A DNA stretch of 64,000 nt. Origin: Basidiobolus meristosporus CBS 931.73 (lineage: Eukaryota; Fungi; Basidiobolomycota). The stretch lies in NCBI GenBank assembly GCA_002104905.1, contig MCFE01000005.1, positions 1 to 64,000 on the forward strand, read 5' to 3'. Positions 2,816-45,529 of the stretch are shown here, in pieces. How positions within the stretch are numbered: position 1 is the stretch's first letter; every line of letters begins with the position of its first letter. The notes beneath the pieces are model-generated. The model made no database searches. It saw only the letters and a program-made list of their open reading frames with translations, and was not told the origin of the DNA. Position numbers and translations under genes: made by a program.

Positions 2816-3339
2816 GCTTGCTGGAAATATTTTTCGGAATGTGTTTGTGGAGTTTGGTGACTTTTGGTCAACTTTGAGAAATAACTGTATTGCAGGTACC
2901 TGATATCATGGTTTAATTAATCCAAACAAGTCCATATAGACAATCAGGTCACAAAGTAAGGCACTATATAGGCATTTTACAAATCTAAATATCAGGAGCA
3001 ACACTGAGCAATATCACATCTCATGTAAATACTTTAATTTTTGCACAATGAATCAGCAAATATAGTTTATTGCTATGGCAAGACTCCAAGAAGTATTGGA
3101 AGTGGCTTAGACAGCCAAAAGGATTCAGAGATATATACCAGTTATTGGGTTCTATTAAAGTGTCAATAGTTTTTGGAAACTCTGTGAGAATAGAGATGAG
3201 AGTGATCTGAAAAAGGTCCCAGAAAGTGTTATGCAAGGTTAGGGGGCTCTTGGATAAGTTCAGAAATACCCATATCCTTCAGGCCTTAGATATTTCTGAG
3301 AGTCAGCCAGTATCTTACAACCTAAGTCCTAGGTAATTA

Positions 3340-4340
3340 ATATCGTAGATTTCGTAATTGCACCTAAATATTCACCTAACTTGGTCACTTGGATCATTGC
3401 TTACAAATCTTAGAGAATTATGGACAAACTCCTTTTCGGAATTTACTTGAAATATTTTCACCAGAATACTAGGTACTTTGAACATGAAAAATCAATAAGT
3501 TGTCTAAGCAGCCCCATTCTTTGCACATATGTTCTTGAGACTTTTCTGACCATGTTTTACGTGTTTGTTCTGCCATACAAAATAGAAATATAAATGCTAC
3601 TTTTGCCTTCAATAAATCGTAAGTGAAAACCACATAATCTACATGTTCTCCCAATCACTTCCAATATCTCCAAAACTCTTACAACAAGTGATTGATGATT
3701 CAATGTGAAGCCTATTAGGATTTAAGGATATTTGAATGGTTTTGGTGAAATATAACTACGGAAAATTGCTGCTAGATTTTAGGTAGTACTGGGTGTGGTT
3801 TGCAGGATTAGAAGAATTGCATGATGTTCACTAGGTGTTTTACTGAGTTCAAACACAGTGCTTGTAATATGAAGAAGATCTCTTAGAACCGATAATAAAT
3901 ATGCTTTCAGAGAGGTCCTGGGAGATGGTGTATCAACTTCAGGGTCTTTTAAGCTTAAAATGGATGAGTTGCTTAGATATAAGCCAAATAATTACTGTTC
4001 TAAATTTCGTAATTACACTCAAGTATTCCATTAACCTGGTCACTTAGAGCACAGTCTATGAATCTTCAAATATCTTGGCCAAGTTCATTGTCGGGATCTA
4101 CTTGGAATATTTTACTAAATATCAGGTACTCACAACATCAAAGTTCTCAAAGTTGTCCAAAGGTCCCCAAACTTTGCACATATGGTCTTTGGACCTTATC
4201 AAACCTATTGTGCATGTTCGTTTTACCAAGACCATATAAAGTATGAATACCACTTTTACATTCAATAAATCAGTAAGTGAAAACCACATAATCTACTGGT
4301 TCTCCCAATCATTTCCAATATCTCCAAACTCTTGCAACAA
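3340..4340. repeat. Degenerate direct tandem duplication, period ~653 bp, AT-rich, probably pseudogenic
   Basis: TTCAATAAATC..GTAAGTGAAAACCACATAATCTAC...CTCCCAATCA.TTCCAATATCTCCAAA occurs at ~3608-3688 and ~4261-4340. Weaker matching blocks at ~3345-3400/~3995-4050 and ~3440-3540/~4075-4190. Confidence 0.6.
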
Positions 4341-5089: not shown

Positions 5090-5962
5090 TTAGAATGACC
5101 TATCCATAAAGGTAGCGGCGTCAAAGTGCTTGACAGATCCCCTCAAGTCAATGTTCTCCTTGCCAATGAACTGCTCGTGCACCTTCTCCATAGACTTGAA
5201 GTACTTGACAGTCTTCACGTGGAGCTCGTGAGTAGCATCCTCATCACACACAATCAAGGCGGAACGATGCAACTGAATGGCTGACACGGTCCACATGTGG
5301 TTCACTCCCTCCTCGATACACTTGGCCAAGGCAACAGCCTTCGACTGGCCAGTGATGATAAGCACGATCTCACGGGCGTCCATCACAGTGGCGACACCCA
5401 CGGTCAACGCAAGCTTGGGGACCTTGTTGACATCTCCGTCGAAGAAGCGTGCATTGGCAAGGATGGTCTCGTAGGCAAGGGTCTTGACACGAGTGCGTGA
5501 GTGGAGCGAGGAGCCTGGCTCGTTGAAGGCAATGTGGCCATCAGGTCCGATACCACCGAGGAAGAGCTCGATTCCTCCAACTGAGCGGATCTTCTCCTCG
5601 TAGCGAATGCACTCTGCCTCCAGGTCAGCGGCGTTTCCGTTCAAGATATTCACGTTCTGGGGCTTGATGTCGATGTGAGAGAAGAGGTGCTTCCACATGA
5701 AAGAGTGGTAGCTCTCGGGATGATCTCTGGGAAGACCGACGTACTCGTCCATGTTGAAGGTGATCACGTTCTTGAAGGAGAGCTCTCCGGCCTTGTAGAA
5801 AGCTACCAAGCGCTTGTAAACTTGGATGGGTGAGCCACCAGTAGGGAGACCGATCACAAAAGGTCTTTCCTCAGTTGGGTTGAACTCCAAAATACGACAC
5901 TTGATGTACTCAGCAATGTATTGACTGACTTTGGAGGCGTCGTCGCGTACGATAAGTCTCAT
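5090..5962 (-). CDS. NAG1: Glucosamine-6-phosphate deaminase, copy 1 (intronless, 290 aa)
   Basis: MRLIVRDD start at ATG 5962. [17 protein letters not shown] (catalytic Asp), [17 protein letters not shown] and CDEDAT motifs of NagB/GNPDA. Confidence 0.97.
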
Positions 5963-6762
5963 TGTAATTGATTGAAGGCGGTAGAAGTGATTTGTTAGAA
6001 CCTCGGCATTCTCCAAGGAAACATTTATATGAGCCAACTAGATTATCGACTACTCTCGAATGGATCCCAATACACTTCCCGAAACCATGAGAATCTTGAC
6101 GGCCTTCTCAAAATGGTAGTACAGGTAATTCGAAGGGAATCGGTTGGCGCTATCATACCAATAGAAGTGAGTTATGGCAGAGATGTCGGAAGTCCGGATA
6201 CTCTTGATGCATGACGGTAACTTGATATACCCAGATCAAATCACAGCGCACTGCAATTGGAAATTGAGCCACATTTTCTTGGGTTAATTTACCAAACAAA
6301 TACTCACAACTGGTTGAGTTATTTACATCTCAACACAACCCAGTGTAAATTGTTTAACTTCGAGCATTTCCACATGCATGGTTCTGGGGACGTTCCTGCA
6401 GAATTTATGTGGACGTTCATTCAATGGGGAGTATATGTTCATATTGTTGACATTTGTAGCCATGACCGTAACTATTGGTCACTAGATTCCTGTAGCGGTG
6501 TAAGTAGGTATTAGGCTCCTGGGGATCTTTTCCAGCCGCCGGTAAGCAGACACTTGCCCACCATCGCACACAACCACATGCATTAGTAAGGAAAGGAAAT
6601 CAACAACTTTAATGATGATCCGAAAAATAAATGGAAAATTATGTGCCACGATCGTGGAGAACAAAGTTTAAAACATCATTTTGATACGAAATGTATCTTC
6701 AGTATGATACACATTATCCTACGTTTCTTTCCTAATTGACGAGAACTACAAAGTGAGGCTGC

Positions 6763-7687
6763 TTAATTGGGTCTTTGTTCGGCTTCTAACTCTTCAATTT
6801 CCCCTTCATCCTCAACATAGGGTGATGATGGAGCACTTGGCTCAGAGACTGGCTCCAACAGGGATGCAGTCTGTTCCAAGGATTCCCTAGCACCAATGTA
6901 GGGCTTCTCCTCAGTCGCAGCGCTATCGGATGCATGCTCGGACGGTGCAGCATTGTCCGGCGCGGTGATGGCCTCCTTGCCCTTCTTCTTTGATGGAACT
7001 TCCCAAGCGTACAGTGGCACGAAAGATTCGAAGAATCCAACGTCCTCGAATAAATTTGGGAAGATCCAGATACCGGGTTTGCAAACGACGAAAGTGATGA
7101 CGAAGAAGATCAAACGAACGATAGCGGTAACCATAAGCAATCCCAGCAGTCCCAATATACCAACAGAGACGTACCAAGCACCGTCTCTCATGATCGGCGG
7201 CCACAGTGGGAACATGACACCAATCAACACGATGGCAACAAGACCGATGCCACCAAGGATGGTCTTCATTTGTGAGCCCTCGTATAACCAGGCGTAATAA
7301 CCTTCCTCTTGGAAGGTTTGCATAGGGACAATAGTAAGGTTACGATCGTTACGTTCGCATTTGATGATCAAGCCAGATTGTAATAGCTCCTGCATCAGCT
7401 CCTCGGCCTCTTGGCGTGAAGCGACCTTGGGGCGTGATTTATGGACATATGAGGGGCGTAGAAGTGCGTTACAAGCACTCTTTCCTATAGAGTCAGGTAA
7501 AGAGAGGAGGTTACTGTTAGCAAGGTCATCTTAAAGAAAAGTATCAATCAACAAGACACCCACCCTTAAAATAGTTGACACGTCTTCCGTTGACAACGCC
7601 TTCGCGAGGCTTCAAGCCGGAATTTTTGGTATTGAGCAGGTATTCCGCAACTTTGAAGTGCTCCTTTGGTACTCCTTCCGTGTCCAT
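6763..7687 (-). CDS. SEC62: Translocation protein Sec62; intron 7485-7563
   Basis: Spliced N-terminus MDTEGVPKEHFKVAEYLL...RRVNYFKG|KSACNALL, then YYAWLYEG, two TM helices (FPLWP; VRLIFF) and GIWIFPNLFEDVGFFESFVPLYAW. Confidence 0.93.
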
Positions 7688-8478
7688 TTTGTTCTATTCA
7701 AGACTGTACGACTCACTCAAGAAATAATCACTCGTATCTGGGATATTGAGGGGGTTAGTTTCTTCTCTTGGTGCTGAGAAACGTTGTGAAGTGTCCCTTG
7801 GATAACTTCTAATAATCACCTTAGTGTTTCTCCCAGGAAAGAAGTGGTTCTTACACTTCACCGACTGAGGTTGGATATTTGTTGGATCTCCCACCCGGGT
7901 CAATCCAGATTCTACAGTCAAGTTGATTGATTTGATGGGAGGGGTGTCCTCAGTAAAATAGGAGCATAGGGGTCAAATACCACTGATGGTACTGCCAACA
8001 CAGTGAGTTTGCCAACTTCACACAAAATCATTGGCTGTTAATGAAATATCTCACCAACCAACCACAATCTCACTGGTCAGTATACATCAAAATCGTGCCA
8101 GTACGATACTGATGCTGATGCTGAACAAAGTAAACTTAATTGACTACTGTTTAAGCATTTATTTACAACATGGAAGTCTAGTGCATAAACACATGAACAA
8201 AGGTTGAAGGATTGATACCGCGTATATTAGTGATGACCGCCGAGCAATGAAATAGTAAAAGACTAGTAGTGTATTTACATTGAAACTTTCGTGTGGGAGA
8301 GACGAGTCGATTGCGGTGAGATTGAAGGACATTCAAAGTGTTGGAGGTAGGAATAAAAGCAAGAGCAAAATTTCACTCGTCAAATGAATTTCGAAACGCA
8401 GCGGTCTCTCGGAGATCTCCCATGTTGACTTAAAACAATCAGATATGAACGACAAACTTGAGGTCAACCTACAAGCAC

Positions 8479-10146
8479 TCAGTCAGACAAGTCGGACTCC
8501 GATTCAGAGCCCTCGTCCGAGTCGTCATTCGAGGACATGGGTGAGTAGCCGCCTCTACCCAACATGGAAGAGAGTGGCTTTTTGCCACCATGAGTGGGGC
8601 GAATACGAGGCTGCTCAACGTTACTTTCAAACACCGCAAGCTCACCAGGCTCGGACTCTTCGAATTCAATAACGCTTGGCTGGGCCTCAGCCTCTGCATC
8701 CTGGTTGTCACTTTCAGCCTCGTTCTCAACGGGAGTCGATGGTGAGGCCTCCACTTTGCTTTTCCCGTTGGTCTTGCCATTTGCCTTTCCGTTGGGTTTG
8801 CTCTCTGTGGCGCCTTTTTGGGATTTCTTCCCGCCAGGACCACGCCCTGCCATCACAATGAACTCTTGCCAGATATACTGTTTGCATTGATCGGCATTTG
8901 GCAAATCTTGGATCATCTTGGCGATAGTGGGATGAGAAAACCCGAAATAGTCGGGACCAGATGCAGAGTTACTGTGTTCTCTCTTGCGGATAGTGTTCAC
9001 TGCTTTTACAACAGTGGTCCACGCACCTGTAGCAGTGTTTGCGATAATGGGATTATCCGGCTGGTCCTCGGGCTCGATATGGAACTAAAACCATCGTTGT
9101 TAGACAAAGCCAGGCTATTCAGGAGTAACTTCGAAAGGATCTACCTTTGGCCCCTCTCCACCGTCCGATATTCTGCAGACATATGTGGTTTGACTCTCAG
9201 GATCAACCATACTAGCGTATGATCTAGATGGATAGTGCGTAACTATTAGATGAAGCACCGAGGTCAATGCTTCGACGGTGCTTACCTTTGTACAGTGTAG
9301 CCTACTGGCCATATATACCGTTCGTTGTGGAAGGTACTACGATCATATACGATTGTCCCCAAATCACTGACGGTCAACACGCCAACCTGAACCGGTAGAA
9401 TATAGTCACCTTCTTCGTTTTTAGGCAAATCTTGAACTCTGCGCGCTTTCACCTCCACTCTCTTTTGTCTTCGTTTCTTTGGCGCTGGCTCCGATGGGGA
9501 TGCAGTGGTGGGCGATTTCCGCTTAGAGTTTGCTGTGGGTGTAGCTTTAGCTGGGCTCTCTTTAGCGCCCTTCTCACTCTTCCGCTTGGGAGGGCTTCTA
9601 CGTGCCAAAGGGACATCTAAAACCGTAGGTACGTATGGACGTCAACGATATTGGTCTACACTTCTTGGAATAGAAACCAACTGACGAACATACCAGACAA
9701 GTCCGACTCAGGCTCTGAAGCGCTTGAAGCTTCGGAAAGAGGATCTGAATCCTCGAGTTTTGCTAGCCGTTCGATCAATATACTGAATAGCAATTAGGAC
9801 TGCGAAACCGGAACTGAATAAACCACAAACACAGCAAACGAGACTTACTTGTTTTCTCTCTTCAAACGGTATACTTTCCTCTCTTGTTTCTCAACAATTT
9901 CCGTCAACCTGTCAACTTCCTGTAAAAACAAGGTGTTAATGCCTTGCGCATGCAAACTCAAGTTATCAAACTTATAGATGGGCCGAGAGTGCGACCCTCA
10001 AATAAGCGAAAGGAAAGCTTTACCTCCAAAACCTCTTTGAGCTTTTGCTTGAGCTTCTTATACTTCTCGGGCGATGGGGAGGGTTCAACATCTTTGTTTT
10101 TTGAAGAACGATCCCTTTTGCTTGATGGGTAAGTCGCTAGAGGCAT
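8479..10146 (-). CDS. FYRN/FYRC-domain chromatin protein (TBRG1/NIAM-like) with an INO80E-like N-terminal coiled coil; multi-exon
   Basis: EKYKKLKQKLKEVLE|EVDRLTE...RLKRENK coiled coil. LPVQVGVLTVSDLGTIVYDRSTFHNERYIWPVGY (FYRN) and SGPDYFGFSHPTIAKMIQDLPNADQCKQY (FYRC). GT-AG introns between ORF pieces. Confidence 0.8.
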
Positions 10147-11252
10147 AGTTTACTTGTGGTACGTTGTACTTTACACAGCAGTAAGTGAAAAGGCTGTATC
10201 AGTTTTGCCAGGTAATAGAAATATGATAGGAAGAGAAAGAGTAGCGAGGCAATGTACGAGGAGCTCAAAAAATGAAACTTTCGTGATAGGAGGGAAGAAG
10301 CAGGGGTGGGTTGGAGATAGCTATCAGACTTGCAAGGGAAGGTTGCTTGATAATGCAAAGATATGATTGTAGAGAAAAGAAGGATCAGGCAGGATTGGGG
10401 AAGGAGGGTAGATCGTAATTGCATGGGGAAGAAATCACACTAGAAGGAAAGAAATCAATTTCAAATTGTACGGTAAGATAGACCGAAGAATCGATGAGCC
10501 AGAACCAGATACTACTCTATTAGGATATTAAGTAGAGGAAATTCACCGAAAAGTTACGCACCGTTGGAAAGCCCATATTAATCAAGGAAGACAGAGAAGA
10601 AAGGTTCGGTCAAGGATGGAGAGAGTATTATTATAGCATAAGAGATAAAGAACTTAAATAAGCGGAAGAGGACTGCCAGGCCAATGACTAGTTTTAAACA
10701 ACTTCGTTTCAGTTATTCCTTGTGGCATGATTTCGCGCACAAAAGGGTGAGTGTTTTGCTTTGAAGACATCATTGCCTTCGTAATGGGCTGGGTCTCGAT
10801 TAGGTCAAGACAGCAAGCTTTAAATAGATCGTTCTCTGACTAATATAGCAAACTGAAAGGGGTATTATTGCAGGGCTATAACCCAGGCAACCCTGCCGAT
10901 TTATTTTAGTGACGACAGCATGCTACCGGTTGACCAGGTGAATGATTCAACATTGCATAGAAACTATAGTATCCAGTCGGCATAGTCAATAGATGAATGC
11001 AGGCTGTTTTAATCCATATTGCGTTAGTTAGCATATTATTTGTTTATACAAGCCACGATGTAGAGTTAGGGCAAAAATGGCGGCATGAATTCCTTTTCTG
11101 GATGACTCCTCGAGCATTGGCGGATCAATATTTATCACGATCAAGCCAGCTAACTGAGCTGGCTTTGTTACCGACTGCCTTTTATGTTAGCGTATAAAAT
11201 ACGCCCGGATTTTGTTGACTCGTAGCCTGCAACTTGCACTGGTTATTTCACC

Positions 11253-12128
11253 ATGAGATTAGTTATTCGCAATGATGCTCCAAAAGTTAGTCAATACATC
11301 GCTGAGTATATCAAGTGTCGTATCTTGGAGTTCAACCCAACTGAGGAAAGACCTTTTGTGATCGGTCTCCCTACTGGTGGCTCGCCCATCCAAGTTTATA
11401 AGTACTTGGTCGAGTTCCATAAGGCTGGAGAGCTCTCCTTCAAGAACGTGATCACCTTCAACATGGACGAGTACGTCGGTCTTCCCAGAGATCATCCCGA
11501 GAGCTACCACTCTTTCATGTGGAAGCACCTCTTCTCTCACATCGACATCAAGCCCCAGAACGTGAATATCTTGAACGGAAACGCCGCTGACCTGGAGGCA
11601 GAGTGCATTCGCTACGAGGAGAAGATCCGCTCAGTTGGAGGAATCGAGCTCTTCCTCGGTGGTATCGGACCTGATGGCCACATTGCCTTCAACGAGCCAG
11701 GCTCCTCGCTCCACTCACGCACTCGTGTCAAGACCCTTGCCTACGAGACCATCCTTGCCAACGCACGCTTCTTCGACGGAGATGTCAACAAGGTCCCCAA
11801 GCTTGCGTTGACCGTGGGTGTCGCCACTGTGATGGACGCCCGTGAGATCGTGCTTATCATCACTGGCCAGTCGAAGGCTGTTGCCTTGGCCAAGTGTATC
11901 GAGGAGGGAGTGAACCACATGTGGACCGTGTCAGCCATTCAGTTGCATCGTTCCGCCTTGATTGTGTGTGATGAGGATGCTACTCACGAGCTCCACGTGA
12001 AGACAGTGAAGTACTTCAAGTCTATGGAGAAGGTGCACGAGCAGTTCATTGGCAAGGAGAACATTGACTTGAGGGGATCTGTCAAGCACTTTGACGCCGC
12101 TACCTTCATGGATAGAACTCTTCAATAG
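11253..12128 (+). CDS. NAG1: Glucosamine-6-phosphate deaminase, copy 2 (intronless, 291 aa)
   Basis: Same catalytic motifs as copy 1 and nearly identical core sequence, in opposite orientation. Confidence 0.97.
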
Positions 12129-12398
12129 ATGAAACAGTAATATTCCCCATGTATTATTTGATTATTTTAGAAGAATAAAAACTCTAAATTGTATAGTGGA
12201 CTGTGATCATTTTCGATATTAAGCACAAGTAGGCGTTTAAATCAAACGCAATAGTGACATGCGGACTATCCTGGATTAAAATTTCCTTCATCAACAACAA
12301 TAATGACCTCTTTGTTTACAGTTGCAGCAAGAGGTACAAAGCCAGTATGACATTTAACATCTTCACTTCTCTAGCCAAAGTTCGTCGAGCTACACAAT

Positions 12399-12850
12399 AT
12401 GGTGCAAATCCTATTACCCGCCACATCGGTCACAAGCACCCAAGATCATAGCCGAGAAATGATATTGTTTGAATTGCAGGGTTCTTTAGAGACAAGCCTA
12501 GAGGATTTGAAGAGCGTCAAAATGGGGGATATCACATACAATTCCCACGTAAGTTGTCGTTAACACCAAGTTTCATAGAGGCACTAATTCACATGCATGT
12601 CTCCTTTTCAAAGGGAGACCCGATATTGTATATTGGCAATCATAAGATTGAGGGCTCCATCACGAAGCTTCGTAAGCCTTTGGCCTTAATAAAAAAGCTG
12701 GACAAGGAAAAACTAAGCGACATTTCTATCGCTGACACTGATCATTTGGAGTATAGAATGGTGACACTTATCAAACAGAAGTACGTGTTCAAGGCTAGAC
12801 CAGATCCTGTTATTGCTGAAGATTACAAGGGGATTTCGGTGTTAAAATGA
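12399..12850 (+). CDS. CTF8: Chromosome transmission fidelity protein 8 (Ctf18-RFC subunit); intron 12549-12613
   Basis: MVQILLP...MILFELQGSLE...|GDPILYIGNHKIEGSITKLRKPLALIKK...KQKYVFKARP matches the CTF8 pattern (MVQI, ELQG, L.IG.H.L.G.I..L.KP, K..FK.RP). Confidence 0.85.
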
Positions 12851-13812
12851 ATTTCAGTATCTCAAACCCATACAACTACCTCCCCAACATCTTAACTTGA
12901 ATCCCTCAATTGCTTGCATTAATTGATCAAGCAGCCATGTAAATTCCATCAGAATAAAGCTACCAGCACATCACTCGCTACTGCTCTACATGCGTGAGAT
13001 ATCATTTGAGCAATTGCCAGGTCATCCCAAATTTCAGTACCAGGATTTACCGTCCACGTACAAAATTTAACTTCGACGCTGACCGGAGGTATCAGCAACA
13101 GGAATATCGGTATCTTCCTTAAACGGGGATTACAAATGGCTTTGCGACAAACATGGAAAATAAAGTGGCTTGATGGCTACAAGTTGTTAATTGTCGAAAT
13201 GGCTGAATACCCGTGGTATCGGAATATGTGATCGTGTAACGTTTTCGGAAGGTTGGAAACTGATCAAGAGCAAATGGGGAAAGGTATTGGAGAAGTATCC
13301 GAGTTAGAGTGAAATACACCCTATGATTACGTTTGGTCGAGTCCATGAATTCAATCTAGATTCCTAGCGTATTGGAGGGCTGATAGTGTCCAAATTATCA
13401 GATTGTTGACTACAGGGCGTATGCACATCCCTTTACCAAGTAATAGGTGACAAAGACAATAGCAGATGTAAGATGAAGTCATGTATTCTCAATCTAGCAA
13501 TTCAGCTGGTTTCGGTTCGTTGATATTGGAGACATCTGTGGCCAGGATAGAAGCCGAGATGATTGGGCCTCTCAAATACCATAAACGAGCTTATTTTCTT
13601 CACATTCTCCCATTGACTAGGGTGGGTAGCCCCATATTTGGCCAAGTAAAATATCGGCAAGTGGGGGATGGGAATTCTAGGTCGAATTCTCTTATTGGTA
13701 TGCCCGATCAAAAGCATTTGTCCAATCATGACCGTTGTGTGACGAACCACTCTGCGGCTATATATAACTGTTCACAAGCATAGTCATGGTCATCAGAATC
13801 ATTCAATTAAAC

Positions 13813-15012
13813 ATGTCCACCGTGGGCAAGGTCGTAAAAATCACTAATGCTCGTATCGTTCGAGACGGCAAGATCGTCACCGGCGAGAACCTTTACGTAA
13901 AGGACGGAAAATTCATCGACGGAAAGAGCTTCTTCTGGGATGACCAAGCTCTACCCGACCTCGTTCTTGATGCCGAGAATGCTATTGTCTCTCCAGGCTA
14001 CGTCGATATCCAGCTCAATGGCGCTGTTGGTGTTGATTTCACCGCCGATCGCGAGACTCTCGCTGAGGGCCTCGAGAAGGTGTCCAAGGCCATCTTGAAG
14101 TGGGGATGTACCGCCTACTGTCCCACCATTGTCAGCTCGCACCCTAACGTGTATGCCGAGTCTATGCACTTGCTTGCCCCACGCCAAGGCAGCGTTGAGC
14201 ACGGAGCTGAGATTCTCGGTGCCCATCTTGAAGGACCATTCATCTCTCCATTGAAGTTTGGTGCTCACGACGTCGAGACCTTGCGTACTTCGCCCAATGG
14301 ATTGAGCGACTTTGAGAGCTGCTACAACTTCAAGCGTGGCGAGAAGAAGAACATTGCCATGATCACCGTTGCACCCGAGATGGAGGGCATCATGGACTCC
14401 ATCCCGGATCTCGTTAACGAAGGGATTGTGGTGAGCATTGGACACTCCAGCTCCACCACAGCCCAAGCCGAGGAGTCTATTGAGAAGGGAGCCACCCTTG
14501 TTACACACATGTTCAACGCCATGCAGCAGTTCCATCATCGTGATCCCGGAATCATCGGTGTCCTGGGCAGCGGCAAGAAGAGACCCCACTATGGCATCAT
14601 CTGTGACGGTATCCATTGTCATCCCAACTCTGTCAAGATTGCATACGACTCGCATCCTACTGGTGTCGTTTTGGTTACGGATGCTATGAGTGCTGCCGGA
14701 CTCCCACCTGGTCAATACTATCTGGGTGATATGGCAGTTGACAAGAGCGAAGACCGCGTGTACATTCAAGGAACCACCATCCTTGCTGGATCGGTGATTA
14801 CCATGGACGAATGTGTCAAGAACTTCCGCAAGTTCACCGGATGCTCTATTGTTGAGGCTATCGAAGCTGCCACATTGAGACCAGCTGAGGCACTCAACAT
14901 CACACACAAGAAGGGAACATTCAACGCAGGAGCCGATGCTGACTTCTTGTTCTTGGATGATGATTTGAACGTTCAACGCGTCTTCGTTGCCGGTCAGGAA
15001 GCCCAAATTTAA
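13813..15012 (+). CDS. DAC1: N-acetylglucosamine-6-phosphate deacetylase, copy 1 (intronless)
   Basis: PGYVDIQLNG, GAHLEGPF, VSIGHS, THMFNAM, DGIHCHP and LVTDAM motifs of NagA/AMDHD2. Start MSTVGK at 13813. Confidence 0.97.
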   Translation: MSTVGKVVKITNARIVRDGKIVTGENLYVKDGKFIDGKSFFWDDQALPDLVLDAENAIVSPGYVDIQLNGAVGVDFTADRETLAEGLEKVSKAILKWGCTAYCPTIVSSHPNVYAESMHLLAPRQGSVEHGAEILGAHLEGPFISPLKFGAHDVETLRTSPNGLSDFESCYNFKRGEKKNIAMITVAPEMEGIMDSIPDLVNEGIVVSIGHSSSTTAQAEESIEKGATLVTHMFNAMQQFHHRDPGIIGVLGSGKKRPHYGIICDGIHCHPNSVKIAYDSHPTGVVLVTDAMSAAGLPPGQYYLGDMAVDKSEDRVYIQGTTILAGSVITMDECVKNFRKFTGCSIVEAIEAATLRPAEALNITHKKGTFNAGADADFLFLDDDLNVQRVFVAGQEAQI

Positions 15013-15815
15013 AGAAACTTACCTTAATTCTTGCTATTAGATAATTTTCACATATTCCTGTTTAAACTGTATTTATAATTTCATCATAACTCTTTCCTAT
15101 GGCAATAAATCAAGGATTTTGTAGAGTATATTTCAAATAACTGTGAATAATATATGAGAATTGGATGGATGAAATGTTTACAATCGAACTACAAGAGGTT
15201 CCGCCTTTCAAGGTGATTTTATAAATCATATGAATTCCTATTTTATTTGGGCACTGTGGTCGAATTTGCTAACATGTAATATTAGGAAACTTACAACTAT
15301 CTGAAGTAAGACTGCTACCAACCTGATACATAATTTTGAGAAACCAGTGTAGAAACTACTGGCGCTCTGTCCGTATAATAAATTTCTGGTTTTCTCGAAG
15401 ATGTAACGTAGTTCAACATACAAGCTCTTGGTTTACTATTGAACGGGAACTAGAACCGGTATACCGTAAATCACTTGACTTATGGTTGCCGATACACTAT
15501 AGAGGATACCATAGAATACTATTCCGGATACACCGAAGTTGACAAGTTACTATATACTACAAGCAGCCACATGAATTCGGGCTAATCACCCAAATTATGG
15601 ATAATATCATGGGCTTTAGCTTACAAATCCAAAATAGAAACTCGGTCGGAGGAGCAGGTTGATTGAATGTAGACTACTAATCGTACAGGACATCCCTCCC
15701 ACTATAGAAGCCGTCATTCTTTTACAGTCATATTTGAGAGACCTAGATGGTACGCCTTCTTATATAAGGATCGAGTTAGCTCCCAATTATTGCAGATCAA
15801 ATTCAATATCATATC

Positions 15816-17009
15816 ATGGAGGGCAAAGTCTTAAAAATCACCAACGCTCGCATCGTTCGAGACGGAAAGATCGTCACCGGCGAGAACCTTTACGTAAAGG
15901 ACGGAAAATTCATCGACGGAAAGAGCTTCTTCTGGGATGACCAAGCTCTACCCGACCTCGTTCTTGATGCCGAGAATGCTATTGTCTCTCCAGGCTACGT
16001 CGATATCCAGCTCAATGGCGCTGTTGGTGTTGATTTCACCGCCGATCGTGAGACTCTCGCTGAGGGCCTCGAGAAGGTGTCCAAGGCCATCTTGAAGTGG
16101 GGATGTACCGCCTACTGTCCCACCATTGTCAGCTCGCACCCTAACGTGTATGCCGAGTCTATGCACTTGCTTGCCCCACGCCAAGGCAGTGTTGAGCACG
16201 GAGCTGAGATTCTCGGTGCCCATCTTGAAGGACCATTCATCTCTCCATTGAAGTTTGGTGCTCACGACGTCGAGACCTTGCGTACTTCGCCCAATGGATT
16301 GAGCGACTTTGAGAGCTGCTACAACTTCAAGCGTGGCGAGAAGAAGAACATTGCCATGATCACCGTTGCACCTGAGATGGAGGGCATCATGGACTCCATC
16401 CCGGATCTCGTTAACGAAGGGATTGTGGTGAGCATTGGACACTCCAGCTCCACCACAGCCCAAGCCGAGGAGTCTATTGAGAAGGGAGCCACCCTTGTTA
16501 CACACATGTTCAACGCCATGCAGCAGTTCCATCATCGTGATCCTGGAGTCATCGGTGTCCTGGGCAGCGGCAAGAAGAGACCCCACTATGGCATCATCTG
16601 TGACGGTATCCATTGTCACCCCAACTCTGTCAAGATTGCATACGACTCGCATCCTACTGGTGTCGTTTTGGTTACGGATGCTATGAGCGCTGCTGGACTC
16701 CCACCTGGTCAATATCACATTGGTAACATGTCGGTGGATAAGAGCGAAGACCGCGTGTACATTCAAGGAACGGATATTCTTGCTGGATCAGTGATTACCA
16801 TGGACGAATGTGTCAAGAACTTCCGCAAGTTCACCGGATGCTCTATTGTTGAAGCTATTGAGGCGGCTACATTACATCCTGCTGAGGCACTCAACATCAC
16901 ACACAAGAAGGGAACATTCAACGCAGGAGCCGATGCTGACTTCTTGTTCTTAGATGATGATTTGAACGTTCAACGCGTCTTTGTGGCCGGCAAGGCGGTT
17001 GATGCTTAA
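15816..17009 (+). CDS. DAC1: N-acetylglucosamine-6-phosphate deacetylase, copy 2 (intronless)
   Basis: All metal-binding and catalytic motifs intact; near-identical core to copy 1. Confidence 0.97.
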   Translation: MEGKVLKITNARIVRDGKIVTGENLYVKDGKFIDGKSFFWDDQALPDLVLDAENAIVSPGYVDIQLNGAVGVDFTADRETLAEGLEKVSKAILKWGCTAYCPTIVSSHPNVYAESMHLLAPRQGSVEHGAEILGAHLEGPFISPLKFGAHDVETLRTSPNGLSDFESCYNFKRGEKKNIAMITVAPEMEGIMDSIPDLVNEGIVVSIGHSSSTTAQAEESIEKGATLVTHMFNAMQQFHHRDPGVIGVLGSGKKRPHYGIICDGIHCHPNSVKIAYDSHPTGVVLVTDAMSAAGLPPGQYHIGNMSVDKSEDRVYIQGTDILAGSVITMDECVKNFRKFTGCSIVEAIEAATLHPAEALNITHKKGTFNAGADADFLFLDDDLNVQRVFVAGKAVDA

Positions 17010-18481
17010 TCTCTGGATTTAGTATCTTCCTCTGATTTCTCGATAGCTTTGTAGTATGTTTTACTTTTTGCTTTTAATTTTTTGTATAAAATTTATGAAC
17101 TATGATAAAATACATCCTATCATAGCCTATTCTAAGAGGCAATAGACTTAATTCACTTCATACAACTTTGATACAAAAGACCTAAATGTTGGCCCACCAT
17201 CTGATAAGAGTGCAATACCTATAGTGAATCGCCAGGCTACAGCTATATTCGGTTTGGCTTCAACATAACACAGATTACAGAGTATCCAGAAAACCAGGTC
17301 AACCATCCATTTTTGAGTATTCATAGATTTACATAAAGCAATATGGAGAATTTGAACTTATTGGTGTGTTATGGACAGAAATGGGCTAAAATGTGCTCAA
17401 TGCAAATTGTATGAATTTGTTCCGAAGGAGAGACCAAGTACTTGTAAGATAACCTGCATCTTACTGGGTTGTCAGGAAAACGAAGTCACATCAAATATGT
17501 TGGCCCATGTATGAACTAGAAAAGTTATCTGATTGTCCATCAAGGGGTTTCAATAGGTATAGGTTTAGGTGTAACTCGATACTTAAATATCACCTTTTAC
17601 ATAATGGAAACTCTTGCCCAGCATGACTAACCGGATGCACATGCCGAATATAGGTAGGTGCAGCTCAATGCCACCTGGCCAACGGATGTTGTACAACGAA
17701 TACTACGCACAACACACGACTAAATCATGTTGGAATTAATTGCACCTATTACTGACAAATATCACACTCATCAAGTATGACATCGTCAATCCGTCAGTAA
17801 GGCTCGTGGTTGGAAATGGTTACTACAGGTGGGGGTTGTACCCGCTGATGGCCAAACCAAAGAAAGCGTCGGCATGGGGATGGACATGGGCAATAAACCA
17901 GGCCAGTTGATGGGAAACCTTATGGACACCCAAGAAAGGAAATGCAGTGTGTGGGGGTAAATTTGGATAAAAACGATTTTTCCATCAAGTCCGTAATATT
18001 CGGCAAAAAGGATTATTCAGCTGTGGCGTGATCCTATAACTGAGCTACCACCTTCAACCTAAATATTCTCTTACTATGAGCTTCTGATTGAATCCACCCT
18101 ACCAATTGCCAAATGGGCTCTTCCCCTGGGCCGGACTCCGCCAATTGTTGTCGCCCTCTCGGGCTGCTTCCAGCGGTACAATCCTGATTTATCGAAAAAC
18201 ATCCAATCAATGTGCGATTGCCTGATATGGGGAGACAAATGTTCTCCGACAAAGGCCCGACTGATTAGGAAATAGTGAACGAAAGTATCGTCTAGTATTA
18301 TGATATGGAAAGTTCAGGAGAGAGGTTGAACATTGATGGAAATTGGGGGATTCTAGATAATCCTCTTACTATTTAGGAATGAGACCAGAGAATGGCAGTT
18401 TTGTGTAGCACAGGACTTCTCGATTTTCCTATAAAGGCTCGCTTCGTACACTCCCTCCTCAGAAAAAATTCCTCCACTAAA

Positions 18482-19684
18482 ATGTCCACCCTGGGCAAAG
18501 TCATAAAGATTGTGAATGGTCGCATTGTTCGCGACGGAAAGATCGTTACCGGTGACTACCTCTACGTAAAGGACGGAAAATTCATCGACGGAAAGAGCTT
18601 CTTCTGGGATGACCAATCCTCTCCTGAGATCGTCTTAGATGCCAAGAATGCTATTGTCTCTCCAGGCTACGTCGATATCCAGCTCAATGGCGCTGTTGGT
18701 GTTGATTTCACCGCCGATCGTGAGACTCTCGCTGAGGGCCTCGAGAAGGTGTCCAAGGCCATCTTGAAGTGGGGATGTACCGCCTACTGTCCCACCATTG
18801 TCAGCTCGCACCCTAACGTGTATGCCGAGTCTATGCACTTGCTTGCCCCACGCCAAGGCAGTGTTGAGCACGGAGCTGAGATTCTCGGTGCCCATCTTGA
18901 AGGACCATTCATCTCTCCGTTGAAGTTTGGTGCTCACGACGTCGAGACCTTGCGTACTTCGCCCAATGGATTGAGCGACTTTGAGAGCTGCTACAACTTC
19001 AAGCGTGGCGAGAAGAAGAACATTGCCATGATCACCGTTGCACCCGAGATGGAGGGCATCATGGACTCCATCCCAGATCTCGTTAACGAAGGGATTGTGG
19101 TGAGCATTGGACACTCCAGCTCCACCACAGCCCAAGCCGAGGAGTCTATTGAGAAGGGAGCCACCCTTGTTACACACATGTTCAACGCCATGCAGCAGTT
19201 CCATCATCGTGATCCTGGAATCATCGGTGTCCTGGGCAGCGGCAAGAAGAGACCCCACTATGGCATCATCTGTGACGGTATCCATTGTCACCCCAACTCT
19301 GTCAAGATTGCATACGACTCGCATCCTACTGGTGTCGTTTTGGTTACGGATGCTATGAGCGCTGCTGGACTCCCACCTGGTCAATATCACATTGGTAACA
19401 TGTCGGTGGATAAGAGCGAAGACCGCGTGTACATTCAAGGAACCACCATCCTTGCTGGATCGGTGATTACCATGGACGAATGTGTCAAGAACTTCCGCAA
19501 GTTCACCGGATGCTCTATTGTTGAGGCTATCGAAGCTGCCACATTGAGACCAGCTGAGGCACTCAACATCACACACAAGAAGGGAACATTCAACGCAGGA
19601 GCCGATGCTGACTTCTTGTTCTTAGATGATGATTTGAACGTCAAACAAGTCTTTGTATCTGGTGAGCAAGTACCAACGTGTTAG
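18482..19684 (+). CDS. DAC1: N-acetylglucosamine-6-phosphate deacetylase, copy 3 (intronless)
   Basis: Start MSTLGK at ATG 18482 by alignment with copy 1; same motifs. Confidence 0.97.
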   Translation: MSTLGKVIKIVNGRIVRDGKIVTGDYLYVKDGKFIDGKSFFWDDQSSPEIVLDAKNAIVSPGYVDIQLNGAVGVDFTADRETLAEGLEKVSKAILKWGCTAYCPTIVSSHPNVYAESMHLLAPRQGSVEHGAEILGAHLEGPFISPLKFGAHDVETLRTSPNGLSDFESCYNFKRGEKKNIAMITVAPEMEGIMDSIPDLVNEGIVVSIGHSSSTTAQAEESIEKGATLVTHMFNAMQQFHHRDPGIIGVLGSGKKRPHYGIICDGIHCHPNSVKIAYDSHPTGVVLVTDAMSAAGLPPGQYHIGNMSVDKSEDRVYIQGTTILAGSVITMDECVKNFRKFTGCSIVEAIEAATLRPAEALNITHKKGTFNAGADADFLFLDDDLNVKQVFVSGEQVPTC

Positions 19685-20278
19685 TCGACTGCAAATATCC
19701 TTGATCCTAGAGATTTTAAAGCATTTCATATTGTAATTATAATATCCCCTTCGTCAATAAAAAGAATCTTTTGATCCATAACACCACATCAATCACTGAA
19801 CAAGGTAGAATATAATTCCCATGTTATTTACCGAAATTCTTCCTGGCGCTTTCTAGGCTCGAGTATGGACGCTGCTTCGCCAAACTTGTCACCTGAATGT
19901 AGTTTTCTTCGGTGGTTACGATTGGTATGAATCAATGTCGGGGCATCTGTGATAAATCAATTTGTCAGCTATCCGGGAACAGAACCTACTTTGCTTTTCA
20001 TATCTGATTGGTCATTGGTCTGAGTGTCCATCGCAGGATTGCCTGTTATTACAATGCTCAAATCTTATTGATTTACTCATCTGATGGAGGTAGCTATCCG
20101 AAAAGTAAGTTTCTACGTTACATAAACCCAAATTAATAATAATCATTTGTGTTGGCCATGTAACATTGACGCTTGAGAAAAATACGAGCTTTCGTTGGCC
20201 TTTCCGCATCATCAGCTATTTCGCTGTTGCATAATATCACCTGTATTCTAGACAGAGCTTGTGTGCGTTTACTTCCAA

Positions 20279-21210
20279 ATGAGACTCATCATCCGCAAAG
20301 ACTTCGATAAAGTAAGCTACTATGTTGGTGAGTACTCTACGAATACATTCGGTTTCAGTTACTTCGAACTAACCCAGAAAGTGCGATAGCAAACTATATC
20401 AAGCAAAGGATAAATCAATTCAAACCCACCCAAGAGCGCCCTTTTGTACTAGGACTTCCAGCTGGCTCAAGTCCCATCGGCGTTTACTGCTACCTTATAG
20501 AGTTTAATCGAAAGGGCGAACTTTCTTTTGAGCATGTCATTACGTTCAACATGGATGAGTACGTAGGCTTACCCAAAGATCACCCAGAAAGTTACCACAC
20601 CTTTATGTGGGTCCATTTCTTCAAGCATATCAACATAAAGCCGGAGAATGTAAACATGTTGGACGGTAATGCAAGTGATCTCAAGGAGGAATGTCGGCGT
20701 TACGAAGAAAAAATCCAATCAGTTGGTGGAGTGGAGCTATTCTTGGGTGGGGTTGGGCCAGACGGACACATTGCTTTTAACGAGCCTGGCTCTTCACTCC
20801 ATTCGGTCACTCGTGTTAAGACTCTTGCCTTGGATACCATCCTTGCCAATGTGCGTTTCTTCGATGGTGATATGAACAAAGTCCCCAAGCTTGCCTTGAC
20901 AGTGGGCGTTGCGACCGTTATGTCGTCCCGTGAAGTTTGTTTGATTATTACGGGTCAGCACAAAGCACTTGCCTTGGCCAAATGTATCGAAGAGGGAGTC
21001 AATCATATGTGGACCGTTTCATGTATTCAACTCCACCCATCGGCCTTGATAGTTTGTGACGAAGACGCGACGCAGGAATTGCATGTCAAGACAGTGAAAT
21101 ACTTCAGTAGCATTGAGGAGGTTCAACATAAACTAATAGGGCCTCAATTCATTGATATCAAAGGCTCGGTTAAGAATTTCCACCCCTCTTGGTTCAATCA
21201 AGCCCATTAG
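20279..21210 (+). CDS. NAG1: Glucosamine-6-phosphate deaminase, copy 3 (divergent, one intron 20328-20389, 289 aa)
   Basis: Exon 1 [22 protein letters not shown]...TAG intron, exon 2 [29 protein letters not shown]...MDEYVGL...[15 protein letters not shown]. The frame is restored by splicing (870 nt). Confidence 0.93.
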
Positions 21211-21582
21211 ATGGTATTGTGAGCGATCACCGATGAAGACAGGTGATGACACACTCAGGACTCAAACTAACGTTCCAACTATGTACTGGTAACGACTTTG
21301 CTGGAGACGATTCCCTTTTTCGCCATAAATTGTTGGTTTTTTGGATGAAGGTATCGAGGTCCGATTCATGGTAGTGCTATATATATATATTATTTTCGTT
21401 TCTTTAATAAAGTAACAAACTTCTTGGTTTATTTCTCATTAATGTAAATAAGGAATGGAAATGTTCGAAATATACATACGCAAGTAGATACTGCTTCTAC
21501 CTGCAAAATAGGTCAAAGTTATTCGAGTAACACGAAATGCTTCTATAAAGTTTGGGGGAATGTTGATCCTCCGCCAAACGCT

Positions 21583-22455
21583 TTAGAGGGCCTTGGTCTG
21601 GAAGCTGGCAGCATCGAAGTGCTTGACAGCACCCTTCAAGTCAATGTTCTCCTTGCCAATCAATTGTTCGTGGACTTGCTCAATAGACTTGAAGTACTTG
21701 ACAGTCTTCACGTGGAGCTCGTGAGTAGCATCCTCATCACACACAATCAAGGCGGAACGATGCAACTGAATGGCTGACACGGTCCACATGTGGTTCACTC
21801 CCTCCTCGATACACTTGGCCAAGGCAACAGCCTTCGACTGGCCAGTGATGATAAGCACGATCTCACGGGCGTCCATCACAGTGGCGACACCCACGGTCAA
21901 CGCAAGCTTGGGGACCTTGTTGACATCTCCGTCGAAGAAGCGTGCGTTGGCAAGGATGGTCTCGTAGGCAAGGGTCTTGACACGAGTGCGTGAGTGGAGC
22001 GAGGAGCCTGGCTCGTTGAAGGCAATGTGGCCATCAGGTCCGATACCACCGAGGAAGAGCTCGATTCCTCCAACTGAGCGGATCTTCTCCTCGTAGCGAA
22101 TGCACTCTGCCTCCAGGTCAGCGGCGTTTCCGTTCAAAATGTTGACGTTGTCAGGCTTGATGTCGATGTGAGAGAAAAGATGTCTCCACATGAAAGAGTG
22201 GTAGCTCTCGGGATGATCTCTGGGAAGACCGACGTACTCGTCCATGTTGAAGGAGATAACATGTTCGAAAGAAAGTTCACCAGCCTTGTAGAACTCGACC
22301 AAACGCTTGTAAACTTGAACAGGGGAACCACCAGTAGGGAGGCCGATGACGAAGGGCTTCTCGGCAGAGGGGTTGAACTCCAAGATACGACGCTTGATGT
22401 ACTCGGCAATGTACTTGCTGACATGATCAGCGTTGTCGCGAATGACTAATCTCAT
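21583..22455 (-). CDS. NAG1: Glucosamine-6-phosphate deaminase, copy 4 (intronless, 290 aa)
   Basis: Full motifs. Core nearly identical to copies 1 and 2, termini divergent. Confidence 0.97.
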
Positions 22456-23480
22456 ACTTCGGTGATTGCAAGTGGAATGGCAGGTGTAATCCGAGAAGAT
22501 TCAACATTGGATGACTTTATAGTAAATCTGGTATTCAATCACCAATGAGTAATGAACTCGATCCATCCAATCATACCACTACTACACACATTTCTATTGC
22601 GTGTTCAATTGAGTAGTAGCAATTTCACCCATTAGACCATATTTAGAGACCACCTTCCTACCATCTTAAAACCATACAAATCAATCAACTCTCGCCCAAC
22701 AAACATTCTTTCGATCATTTTACGGCAACGACCTTCGAGCATCATTTCTTCGGTCTGAGCCACCTCATTGACCAATAAATAAGTCAACCACAATCTCATG
22801 GTATCTTTCGGGTATTCGAATTCTGATACCGGCAGCTTACCAATGCCGAGGTTAGAAATTCATCTGGCAGGTAACAGCCCAAAACCATCCTGATTATTCA
22901 TTATTAAGGAAGTGCATGCGGTAAAATTCAGGATACCCTTCACGTGTGCTCAGGCGGCTACTGATCTTAAAGTAACACCCATATATTTCCTAATTTGGTG
23001 AGCCAGATAGTTTCCGATCCATCCATTTGGAGCTGGATACTGAAGAATACGGATACCATCTGCTCCCAAACTAGTCATCCTCCCAGATGCATCGAGGCCA
23101 CAAGTTATTGGATTCTAGGTCTGGGAGATCCGCTTAGAGAGATCCGCTCCAACAGAGGTGAGGTTTACTTCCGTACCATCATCTCCGCACCCATGTACCA
23201 ATGGCCGTTCTGTCGTTTGAAGAGGTGAGGTGACTAGGTTAAGCATGGGTGGACCTTTCTATAACAAATTGTTGATGGTCAGCTGATTTTCTCTGCTTAT
23301 GTTGCCTATTTTTTTCCAAACCTGGAGGTTAAAATAAGCCATAAATGAAACTCACTAGAGGCTTCATGGAATTATGGACAGTGCCAGGCTTTTCTAGTGC
23401 AGGTTACTAAACCAATAAGAGCCCATTTATACGGTAGAAGCGTGGCCGTTTATTGCTGTGTATTTAAGATATATTTCTTG

Positions 23481-43848: not shown

Positions 43849-45529
43849 ATGACAGATAAGGTTCGTAGTGTGAGGCACTTTTCTCTACCATCACCTGCCA
43901 TATTAATTGATTGATATTCAGAATATTTCAGCGCTGCCTGACAATCCTCTTGCCAAGTACGAGGTAACCGAAAAGAGTATGGAGGATGCGGAGCACAAGA
44001 ATCATGATACACTGAAGCGTGCCCTCACAGCCAGACAAGTGCAAATGATTGCTATTGGTGGTACCATTGGGACAGGTCTGTTTCTTGGTACCGGAAAATC
44101 TCTTAGTACTGGTGGTCCAGGAAGTATGCTGATTGCCTACGCTATTATCGGGGTGATCGTTTACTTCACAATGATATCTCTTGGTGAAATGTCAACATAT
44201 ATCCCAATTGCCGGCTCCTTTAACACATATGCCAATCGGTTTGTCGATGAAGGCTTAGGCTTTGCTCTTACGTGGAACTATTGGTTTAACGATGCTGTGA
44301 GTGTTGCTTCGGATTTAACGGCTGCCCAAATCATTCTGAACTACTGGAAGGTTGATTTCCCCGGCTGGGCCATCTCGCTTATATTTCTCGTCTTCTTGGT
44401 TACCATCAATGCGATCGACGTTCGTTTCTATGGCGAGATTGAATACTGGTTGTCCCTGCTGAAAGTGATCACCATCATTCTATTCATCATCATTGGAATT
44501 TGCGTGAATGCTGGCGCCAACAAGGGATACGGGTATATCGGCTTCAAGAATTGGACACTTGGTGATGCTCCATTTGTTGGTGGTATTGGCGGATTTGCAT
44601 CCGTCTTCGTCACTGCTGCCTTTGCCTACGGAGGTACCGAGTCGATTGGCATTACTGCTGGCGAGACCAAAAACCCTAGAAAGAATGTGCCCAAGGTGAT
44701 CCGTAACGTCTTCTGGAGAATTCTGATGTTCTATATCATGAGCATTTTTGTGATTGGTCTTGATGTCCCCTACAATGCCGAAAATTTGACCGAAAAGAAC
44801 GCTCACGATTCGCCATTTACCTTGGTCTTTCAAATGACCGGCTTTGAGGTTGCCCCGTCTTTCATCAATGCCGTTGTTCTCACCTCGGTGATTTCTGCTG
44901 GTAATCATGCTCTGTTTGCCGGCACCAGATTACTCTATACCCTTGGCGAGCAAGGTCATGCTCCCAAAGTATTCACAAAGCTTACCAAGAATCGCGTACC
45001 CATCTACTCCCTGCTGGCCACTTCCGCCATCTCCTGCATTTGTTTCGCCTCCTCCTATGTTGGCAGCGGTGCCCTCTGGAATTGGTTGCAAAACTTGGTT
45101 GGTGTTTCCAACCAAATGAGCTGGATCGCTATTGGTATCACCTCTTACCGATTCCGTAAGGCCTATCAAATCCAAGGACGTGACTTGAACGAACTCCCAT
45201 TCAAAAGCCCACTCTATCCCTACGGACCTATCTTTGTTGTTGTAGCCAACAGCTTCTTGGTGTTGGTTCAGGGCTGGAGCTCTTTCAAATCCTCACCAAC
45301 GGGTGGATTTGATTTCGTATCATTCCTCTCCTTTTACATTCAGATTCCATTTATGGCCGTCATGTGGCTGGGATGGAAATTCATCAAGGGTACCAAGGTT
45401 GTGGGCTATGAAGAGATGGATCTTGACACCGACAGATACTATGATACTTCGGAGGACCTTCTTGACAACGCGAAGGCTTCCACCGGAATCCGCGGATTCT
45501 TCAACCGCGCTCTCCATTATTTCTTCTAG
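43849..45529 (+). CDS. Amino acid permease (YAT/APC family); short first exon, intron 43861-43921
   Basis: LKRALTARQVQMIAIGGTIGTGLFLG, YGEIEYW, FAYGGTE, GETKNP and RILMFY motifs; about 12 TM helices. Confidence 0.95.

Follow-up and report, generated by a model that had tools for sequence, protein, structure and literature searches.

The first 64 kb of scaffold MCFE01000005.1 (assembly GCA_002104905.1) of the fungus Basidiobolus meristosporus CBS 931.73, hereafter the window, carry a cluster of genes for the catabolism of N-acetylglucosamine (GlcNAc); window coordinates are those of the record. An open reading frame (ORF) listing and profile scans revealed four complete genes for glucosamine-6-phosphate (GlcN-6-P) deaminase of the NAG1/NagB type and three complete genes for N-acetylglucosamine-6-phosphate (GlcNAc-6-P) deacetylase of the DAC1/NagA type between positions 5090 and 22455, all seven being uninterrupted reading frames within a span of 17.4 kb. 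The deacetylase, a metal-dependent enzyme of the NagA/AMDHD2 type (family CE9), converts GlcNAc-6-P to GlcN-6-P and acetate, and the deaminase (NagB/GNPDA type) converts GlcN-6-P to fructose-6-phosphate and ammonium; these two reactions are the last two steps of GlcNAc catabolism. An initial annotation of the window had proposed this complement of intact genes within about 17 kb, and we found all seven where it had placed them, each above the curated cut-off for its family. It had also guessed at an arthropod- or gut-associated, early-diverging fungus, and the strain was indeed isolated from gecko dung, its assembly having been built with PacBio reads (PMC7466969).

Deaminase copies A (5090-5962, minus strand, 290 amino acids), B (11253-12128, plus strand, 291 amino acids) and D (21583-22455, minus strand, 290 amino acids) lack introns, as do deacetylase copies 1 (13813-15012, 399 amino acids, a complete ORF), 2 (15816-17009, 397 amino acids) and 3 (18482-19684, 400 amino acids), which all lie on the plus strand. 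Deaminase copy C (20279-21210, plus strand, 289 amino acids; P0013/ORY07822.1) belongs to a divergent subfamily and is the only one of the seven with an intron, which is 62 nucleotides (nt) long, has GT-AG borders and lies at 20328-20389, after codon 16. The two families are physically linked, with a gap of only 594 bp between deacetylase 3 and deaminase C, and no NAG1-DAC1 pair in the cluster is divergently transcribed, as the initial annotation had stated. Deaminase A is identical to annotated protein P0123, deaminase B to P0001 and deacetylase 3 to P0125. GenBank model P0126 (ORY07820.1, 403 amino acids, 13813-17009), however, is a chimera that merges deacetylases 1 and 2; deacetylase 2 has no annotated gene of its own, and its exact protein was not found in the protein collection searched. 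Because the two genes are merged into one model, the public gene set under-counts the locus, with two deacetylases and not three, and the earlier count of three is the more accurate. GenBank model P0121 (ORY07823.1, 383 amino acids, 21583-22835) fuses exons of a small upstream gene to deaminase D. The ORF of deacetylase 3 runs 30 codons upstream of its annotated start (MAVLCSTGLL..., 18392-18481), and these extra codons could be an alternative N-terminal extension, a targeting peptide or simply non-coding.

All seven proteins exceeded the curated NCBIfam equivalog cut-offs, which are 236.9 bits for nagB (TIGR00502) and 225.65 bits for nagA (TIGR00221). Deaminases A, B, C and D scored 410, 410, 301 (second exon only) and 411 bits, and deacetylases 1, 2 and 3 scored 268, 271.5 and 274 bits; the matching Pfam families are Glucosamine_iso (PF01182) and Amidohydro_1 (PF01979), respectively. 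The catalytic residues of NagB, which from established structural work we take to be Asp72, Asp141, His143 and Glu148 (E. coli and human numbering), are invariant in an alignment of copies A, B, C and D with P0005, a further deaminase of this genome. The motifs D72-E73-Y74 and D141-G-H143-IAFN-E148 occupy invariant columns of that alignment, in which residue numbering is collinear with human GNPDA1 (1NE7). For NagA, we take the metal ligands and catalytic Asp to be Glu131, His195, His216 and Asp273 of the E. coli enzyme, with Gln/Asn replacing His-x-His. In the three deacetylases the motifs DIQLNG, HLEG, GHS, THMFN and VTDA are invariant, and they align with human AMDHD2 and the Vibrio enzyme. 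The catalytic motifs that the initial annotation had reported as kept (HLEG, GHS, THMFN and VTD, as well as those of the deaminases) are thus invariant alignment columns. The nearest solved structure to deaminase B is human GNPDA1 (1NE7, E=3e-120, collinear over residues 1-266), and the nearest to deacetylase 3 is human AMDHD2 (7NUT, E=7e-96), whose residues 11-401 match residues 6-397 of the fungal protein, a full-length match that includes the N-terminal beta-sandwich. Finally, the residues of the allosteric GlcNAc-6-P site of NagB (Ser151, Ser152, Arg158, Lys160, Thr161 and Tyr254) are all invariant in the deaminase alignment, and their conservation makes feed-forward activation of the deaminases by GlcNAc-6-P plausible.

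Self-BLAST of the window revealed that the copies differ from one another by 2-26% in nucleotides. Among the deaminases, nucleotide identity is 97.7% for A/B, 92.6% for A/D, 91.2% for B/D and ~74.5% for C against the others, and the three deacetylases are ~96% identical pairwise (96.3% for copies 1 and 2). This similarity is limited to the coding sequences: matches stop within ~40 nt of the start and stop codons, and the flanking 800 nt of the copies show no similarity, even at a word size of 7. Within the genes, differences between copies are strongly clustered. In a site-pattern test in which the paralogue on scaffold 30 served as the fourth deaminase sequence, sites that group A and B against D and the scaffold-30 copy numbered 44 in nt 1-360 plus 721-876 and 0 in nt 361-720 (Fisher p=6e-11). 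Across nt 361-720, A, B and D are identical bar one site, against 63 differences in the scaffold-30 paralogue. The deacetylases behave similarly. In nt 181-900 the scaffold-30 copy alone stands apart at 166 sites and the cluster copies vary among themselves at 10; for the ends of the gene the corresponding counts are 79 and 83 (core versus ends, p=2e-22). Their groupings also conflict along the gene, with 1 and 2 set against 3 at the 5' end, 2 and 3 against 1 in nt 901-990, and 1 and 3 against 2 in nt 991-1080.

The longest identical tracts between copies measure 182-434 nt, with permutation p values from 0.0018 to <5e-5. The longest in the deaminases, 434 nt, is shared by B (11571-12004) and D (21704-22137), and none of 20,000 permutations gave one as long; these two genes differ at 91 of 876 sites overall. 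A 335-nt tract is identical between A (5454-5788) and B (11427-11761), and one of 274 nt between deacetylases 2 (15973-16246) and 3 (18645-18918), within a 720-nt core that is near-identical in all three. Synonymous divergence (dS) among the deaminases is 0.00-0.01 inside the tract and ranges outside it from 0.22 (A/B) to 0.7-0.8 (A or B versus D); against the scaffold-30 copy it is 1-3. The ratio of non-synonymous to synonymous divergence (dN/dS) is ~0.1. The homogenized region is not simply mutationally cold or hyper-constrained, because the scaffold-30 paralogue differs there at 17-25% of sites (dS ~2). Identity confined to coding sequence, flanks that cannot be aligned, clustered differences, conflicting site patterns and long identical tracts are together the signature of gene conversion. 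These results demonstrate that the genes are old duplicates that have been repeatedly homogenized by non-allelic gene conversion under purifying selection, and that the exchange includes inverted copies lying 5-16 kb apart. We rejected a recent amplification, because beyond the conversion tracts dS amounts to 0.2-0.8 and no alignment of the flanks is possible.

The deaminase copies also form long inverted repeats: A and B share 866 nt (5100-5965 and 11250-12115, 96-98% identity) around a 5.3-kb segment, and B and D share 855 nt (11253-12107 and 21601-22455, 91% identity) around a 9.5-kb segment. Crossing-over between these repeats would invert the 5.3-kb and 9.5-kb segments, and an inversion polymorphism between deaminase copies is possible.

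Beyond the four deaminases of the cluster, the B. meristosporus genome holds P0122 (scaffold 30), P0005 (scaffold 31) and P0283 (on a 61-kb contig), which makes at least seven; deacetylases likewise number at least seven, namely the three described here, P0128 (scaffold 30), P0132 (scaffold 31), P0130 and P0134. Among the best 120 deacetylase matches, Basidiobolus species have 4-7 genes each and every other species has no more than 2. Maximum-likelihood trees place all Basidiobolus deacetylases in a single clade (support 100/99) adjoining Neoconidiobolus and Massospora (Entomophthorales), and they unite the Basidiobolus deaminases as well, though less strongly (92/90). Four subfamilies make up each family, and in each tree three of them have full-length orthologues in B. 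ranarum. The B. ranarum orthologue of copy C is P0124 (92% identity), and copy D is sister to the scaffold-30 copy P0122. The B. ranarum fragment P0127 shares 91% identity with deacetylases 1 and 2 but only 78% with the scaffold-30 copy; because it is nearer to the former, the split between this locus and scaffold 30 predates the separation of B. meristosporus and B. ranarum. Judged from these trees and copy counts, the expansion is specific to the genus Basidiobolus and not a common one. An abundance of nagA-like proteins in Basidiobolales has already been noted in a family-level survey (PMC8778642), and this was the only related statement that we found in the literature, which yielded no published description of the cluster itself.

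Intron content differs between subfamilies. The amplified subfamily (deaminases A, B and D, deacetylases 1-3 and both scaffold-30 genes, L002 10001-13262) is intronless, copy C has its single intron, and the scaffold-31 genes (L003 8186-11046) each contain ~185 nt of introns. Introns were lost before the amplification or along with it.

Deacetylase and deaminase genes are also linked at other loci. On scaffold 30 the gene order is tyrosinase, RNase T, YjeF_N, deaminase (plus strand), deacetylase (minus strand) and CLASP, and this region is an old paralogous segment of the window at 18-35 kb, with 84% nucleotide identity for the deaminase, 76% for the deacetylase, and YjeF_N and tyrosinase genes common to both. 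Scaffold 31 carries a deacetylase (plus strand), a deaminase (plus strand), CK2-beta and two Sugar_tr/MFS genes. In B. ranarum an adjacent pair is indicated by KAK9704233/4, which are consecutive accessions on the same contig. Further adjacent pairs, likewise with both genes on one contig, are indicated by consecutive accessions in Thamnocephalis (RKP05424/5) and Syncephalis fuscata (KAI9597429/30), and by consecutive locus tags in Smittium simulii (BB561_001148/9), Furculomyces (BB559_006314/5) and Calcarisporiella (VTP21DRAFT_7418/9); in Bifiguratus the two genes lie five accessions apart on one contig. Outside Basidiobolus, the linked pairs read from these accessions and tags fall in Zoopagales, Harpellales and Calcarisporiella, and clusters holding both genes are established across Ascomycota (PMC4950302). 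Linkage at two other loci of the same genome, in B. ranarum and in other zygomycetes suggests that the cluster most likely grew from an inherited pair, and the DAC1-NAG1 pair is most simply read as inherited and not newly assembled here. The interpretation offered in the initial annotation therefore stands in part: the amplification is real and confined to Basidiobolus, but independent assembly is not supported, given the linkage that this locus has in common with scaffolds 30 and 31, B. ranarum and other zygomycetes, and the old, gene-converted state of the copies shows that the amplification is not recent.

Two further features were seen at these loci. The two Sugar_tr/MFS_1 genes (L003 14971-19085) lie 4-7 kb downstream of the scaffold-31 pair and by Pfam look hexose-transporter-like rather than Ngt1-like. 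A dispersed repeat of ~350 nt, with no Rfam or tRNA match, occurs in the window at 3334-3687 and 3989-4340, 750 bp beyond deaminase A; it also brackets the scaffold-30 pair on both sides (L002 7085-8147 and 13984-14864) and precedes the scaffold-31 pair by 5 kb (L003 2050-3246). Its association with deaminase-deacetylase loci may be due to chance.

Three unrelated genes lie between the copies: those for the Sec62 translocon subunit (6901-7669, minus strand; Pfam Sec62, E=6e-48; an annotated gene model), for an FYRN/FYRC-domain protein (8479-10146, minus strand; Pfam FYRC and FYRN; an annotated model of 432 amino acids) and for Ctf8 (12399-12850, plus strand; Pfam Ctf8), an interleaving that had been recognized in the initial annotation. 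The scan outside the cluster covered 137 stop-to-stop ORF pieces of at least 75 amino acids, with larger ORFs taken separately, and the following statements refer to the 25 of 35 matched families that were listed; small exons could escape such a scan. Among these matches, the rest of the window holds, among others, amine oxidase, Mob1, BAR-domain, YjeF_N, Pex24, amino-acid permease, bZIP, DUF4436 and phosphoribosyltransferase genes, two tyrosinases and two aldehyde dehydrogenases. The aldehyde dehydrogenases are a tandem duplicate (60412-61660 and 62752-64000) with 96.6% nucleotide identity, and the second copy runs past the window end. No hexokinase, ROK or BcrAD kinase domain was present among the matches listed in these ORF pieces of the 64-kb window, nor were MFS_1, Sugar_tr, NDT80_PhoG, Glyco_hydro_3, GH18 or GH20. 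The sole transporter among them is the amino-acid permease (43907-45529), which is unrelated to GlcNAc, in agreement with the earlier remark that the window contains neither a kinase nor a GlcNAc transporter. Both the GlcNAc kinase and the importer would thus have to be encoded at other loci of the genome. Scans of positions 1-24000 for Rfam families and tRNAs gave no hits.

K-mer enrichment across eleven upstream regions brought out only TGATTGAA and AACATTG, and neither was significant after multiple testing. The octamer TGATTGAA, a candidate element, occurs at 8 sites in 64 kb, 4 of which fall in the 3.5 kb that the promoters of the cluster make up. Its sites in the 500-nt upstream regions are at -13 of deaminase A, -86 of deaminase D, -156 of deacetylase 2 and -397 of deacetylase 3, and at -121 of the scaffold-30 deaminase (L002).

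Taking the account as a whole, we consider it probable that the locus reflects a lineage-specific enlargement of an inherited DAC1-NAG1 pair, whose old copies have been homogenized by gene conversion. Both families have grown in Basidiobolus to seven or more genes apiece, which fall into four old subfamilies. Here the deacetylase would have been tandemly duplicated to three copies, and deaminases A, B and D would have arisen by inverted or dispersed duplication, with C as an older paralogue. The central stretches of A, B and D, and likewise of deacetylases 1, 2 and 3, are held almost identical by repeated non-allelic gene conversion under strong purifying selection, while every copy retains its own unrelated promoter region. 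All copies are presumably expressed and active, and the retained copy number may raise or diversify the capacity to burn chitin-derived GlcNAc in the chitin-rich gut and dung of insect-eating animals. A dosage benefit of copy number is a presumed part of this account, and on whether the copies do raise or diversify that capacity we judge the balance to be roughly even, within a structural account that is well supported overall.

Several points weigh against this account. The adjacency of the pairs in relatives was read from accession and locus-tag order and not from DNA. The genome has many tandem duplicates, such as the aldehyde dehydrogenase pair in this window, so that a general propensity for duplication, rather than selection on GlcNAc flux, may account in part for the retention of the copies. 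Because a kinase, a GlcNAc transporter and a regulator were not found within the 64 kb, co-regulation as a cluster is a proposal only, and k-mer enrichment in the eleven upstream regions did not find a convincing shared promoter motif. This last result would also be expected if the copies had been partitioned in their regulation, so that the same protein is made from different promoters in different life stages (hyphae, yeast-like gut cells, ballistic conidia and capilliconidia, dung saprotrophy) and dosage plays no part. Sequences on either side of the genes are unrelated from copy to copy, and the older subfamilies (C, scaffold 31 and others) were already present when B. meristosporus and B. 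ranarum split and have been retained, both of which are consistent with such partitioning. However, homogenization of the coding sequences fits dosage equally well, and different promoters are compatible with the enlargement of an inherited pair for GlcNAc use and do not exclude it; as a replacement for dosage, we regard regulatory partitioning as doubtful, though deserving serious consideration. Copies might instead persist as a neutral by-product of frequent duplication and gene conversion in a large, duplicate-rich genome, with no GlcNAc-specific benefit. The gene count of Basidiobolus is the largest in Zoopagomycota (PMC7466969), and the window holds a young-looking aldehyde dehydrogenase pair (96.6% nucleotide identity) and a tyrosinase pair besides the cluster. 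Nevertheless, the seven genes keep open frames and catalytic residues though their flanks have diverged beyond alignment, dN/dS is ~0.1, and both enzymes of one pathway have undergone a parallel expansion, with at least seven genes each and subfamilies conserved in B. ranarum, which makes a purely neutral persistence unlikely.

The direction of flux and the integrity of the assembly bear on two other explanations. The NagB/GNPDA reaction is reversible, and the deaminases could run backwards, from fructose-6-phosphate and ammonium to GlcN-6-P, for chitin synthesis or for ammonia assimilation in ammonia-rich dung; chitin-rich walls are described for Zoopagomycota (PMC11170279). The deacetylase, however, is needed only in the catabolic or salvage direction, and its co-amplification and linkage with the deaminase at three loci favors catabolism, so that we hold an anabolic or ammonia-handling role to be very improbable. 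Near-identical repeats are prone to mis-assembly, and Basidiobolus is documented to have acquired secondary-metabolite genes horizontally (PMC7466969), so an assembly artefact, uncollapsed haplotypes or bacterial genes were also weighed; we find any of these scarcely credible. The window copies differ at 2-26% of sites, have unique flanks and stand amid ordinary eukaryotic genes in an assembly of PacBio reads (PMC7466969), which makes an assembly duplicate unlikely, and scaffold 30, being only 76-84% identical, is a paralogue and not an allele; we therefore rejected a haplotig or assembly duplicate. Horizontal transfer from bacteria was rejected because both trees nest the genes within fungal clades, beside Entomophthorales, and because the best solved relatives are human enzymes. 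More speculatively, the amplification seen here may extend to the whole pathway, with secreted GH20 hexosaminidases, Ngt1-like importers, deacetylases and deaminases each occupying a separate array homogenized by conversion, a dispersed, high-capacity system for harvesting chitin monomers that would have evolved in Basidiobolus for the guts and dung of insect-eaters, with uniform proteins and diversifying promoters; we put forward this extension tentatively, as somewhat short of an even chance.

Work on GlcNAc catabolic clusters has been almost confined to Ascomycota (PMC4950302), and this locus, together with the linked pairs in other zygomycetes, suggests a far greater age for the linkage of DAC1 and NAG1. 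It also represents an unusual outcome of such linkage, namely multi-copy amplification with neither kinase nor transporter, and a clean natural case in which gene conversion keeps coding sequences alike while their promoters drift apart. Furthermore, it offers a link between gene dosage and a chitin-rich niche, the gut and dung of insectivores, and in practical terms it flags an error in public annotation, in which two deacetylases are counted instead of three. The mechanisms themselves (tandem duplication, gene conversion and purifying selection) are well known, so that specialists should be only moderately surprised: this is a clear gene-family expansion of an already known type.

Several known systems resemble the Basidiobolus cluster. 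In the NAG regulon cluster of Candida albicans (HXK1-NAG1-DAC1), NAG1 and DAC1 likewise encode consecutive catabolic steps and are physically linked. The Basidiobolus locus, by contrast, is multi-copy (four plus three genes), has no GlcNAc kinase among the matches listed and no divergent NAG1-DAC1 promoter, and its copies are separated by unrelated housekeeping genes and homogenized by gene conversion. The GlcNAc cluster of filamentous Ascomycota also groups deacetylase and deaminase genes for GlcNAc use; in Trichoderma reesei it comprises hxk3-dac1-dam1-ngt1 with RON1 and the GH3 gene nag3, and the cluster is ancient within Ascomycota (PMC4950302). Its genes are single-copy, whereas the 64 kb from Basidiobolus contain no Ndt80-like regulator, GH3 gene, kinase or Ngt1 among the matches listed. 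Bacterial nagBA (the nagE-nagBACD regulon of E. coli) places the same two enzyme families side by side, and the allosteric-site residues of NagB are conserved in the fungal deaminases; the Basidiobolus genes, however, are eukaryotic, vertically inherited and monocistronic with their own promoters, and they are closer to human GNPDA1 and AMDHD2 than to the bacterial enzymes. Parallels also lie within Basidiobolus itself, where the scaffold-31 order, deacetylase then deaminase on the same strand, mirrors deacetylase 3 then deaminase C, and the convergent pair of scaffold 30 mirrors deaminase D and deacetylase 3. Scaffolds 30 and 31 and the pairs of other zygomycetes carry one copy of each gene, and the arrangement of four deaminases with three deacetylases occurs only at this locus.

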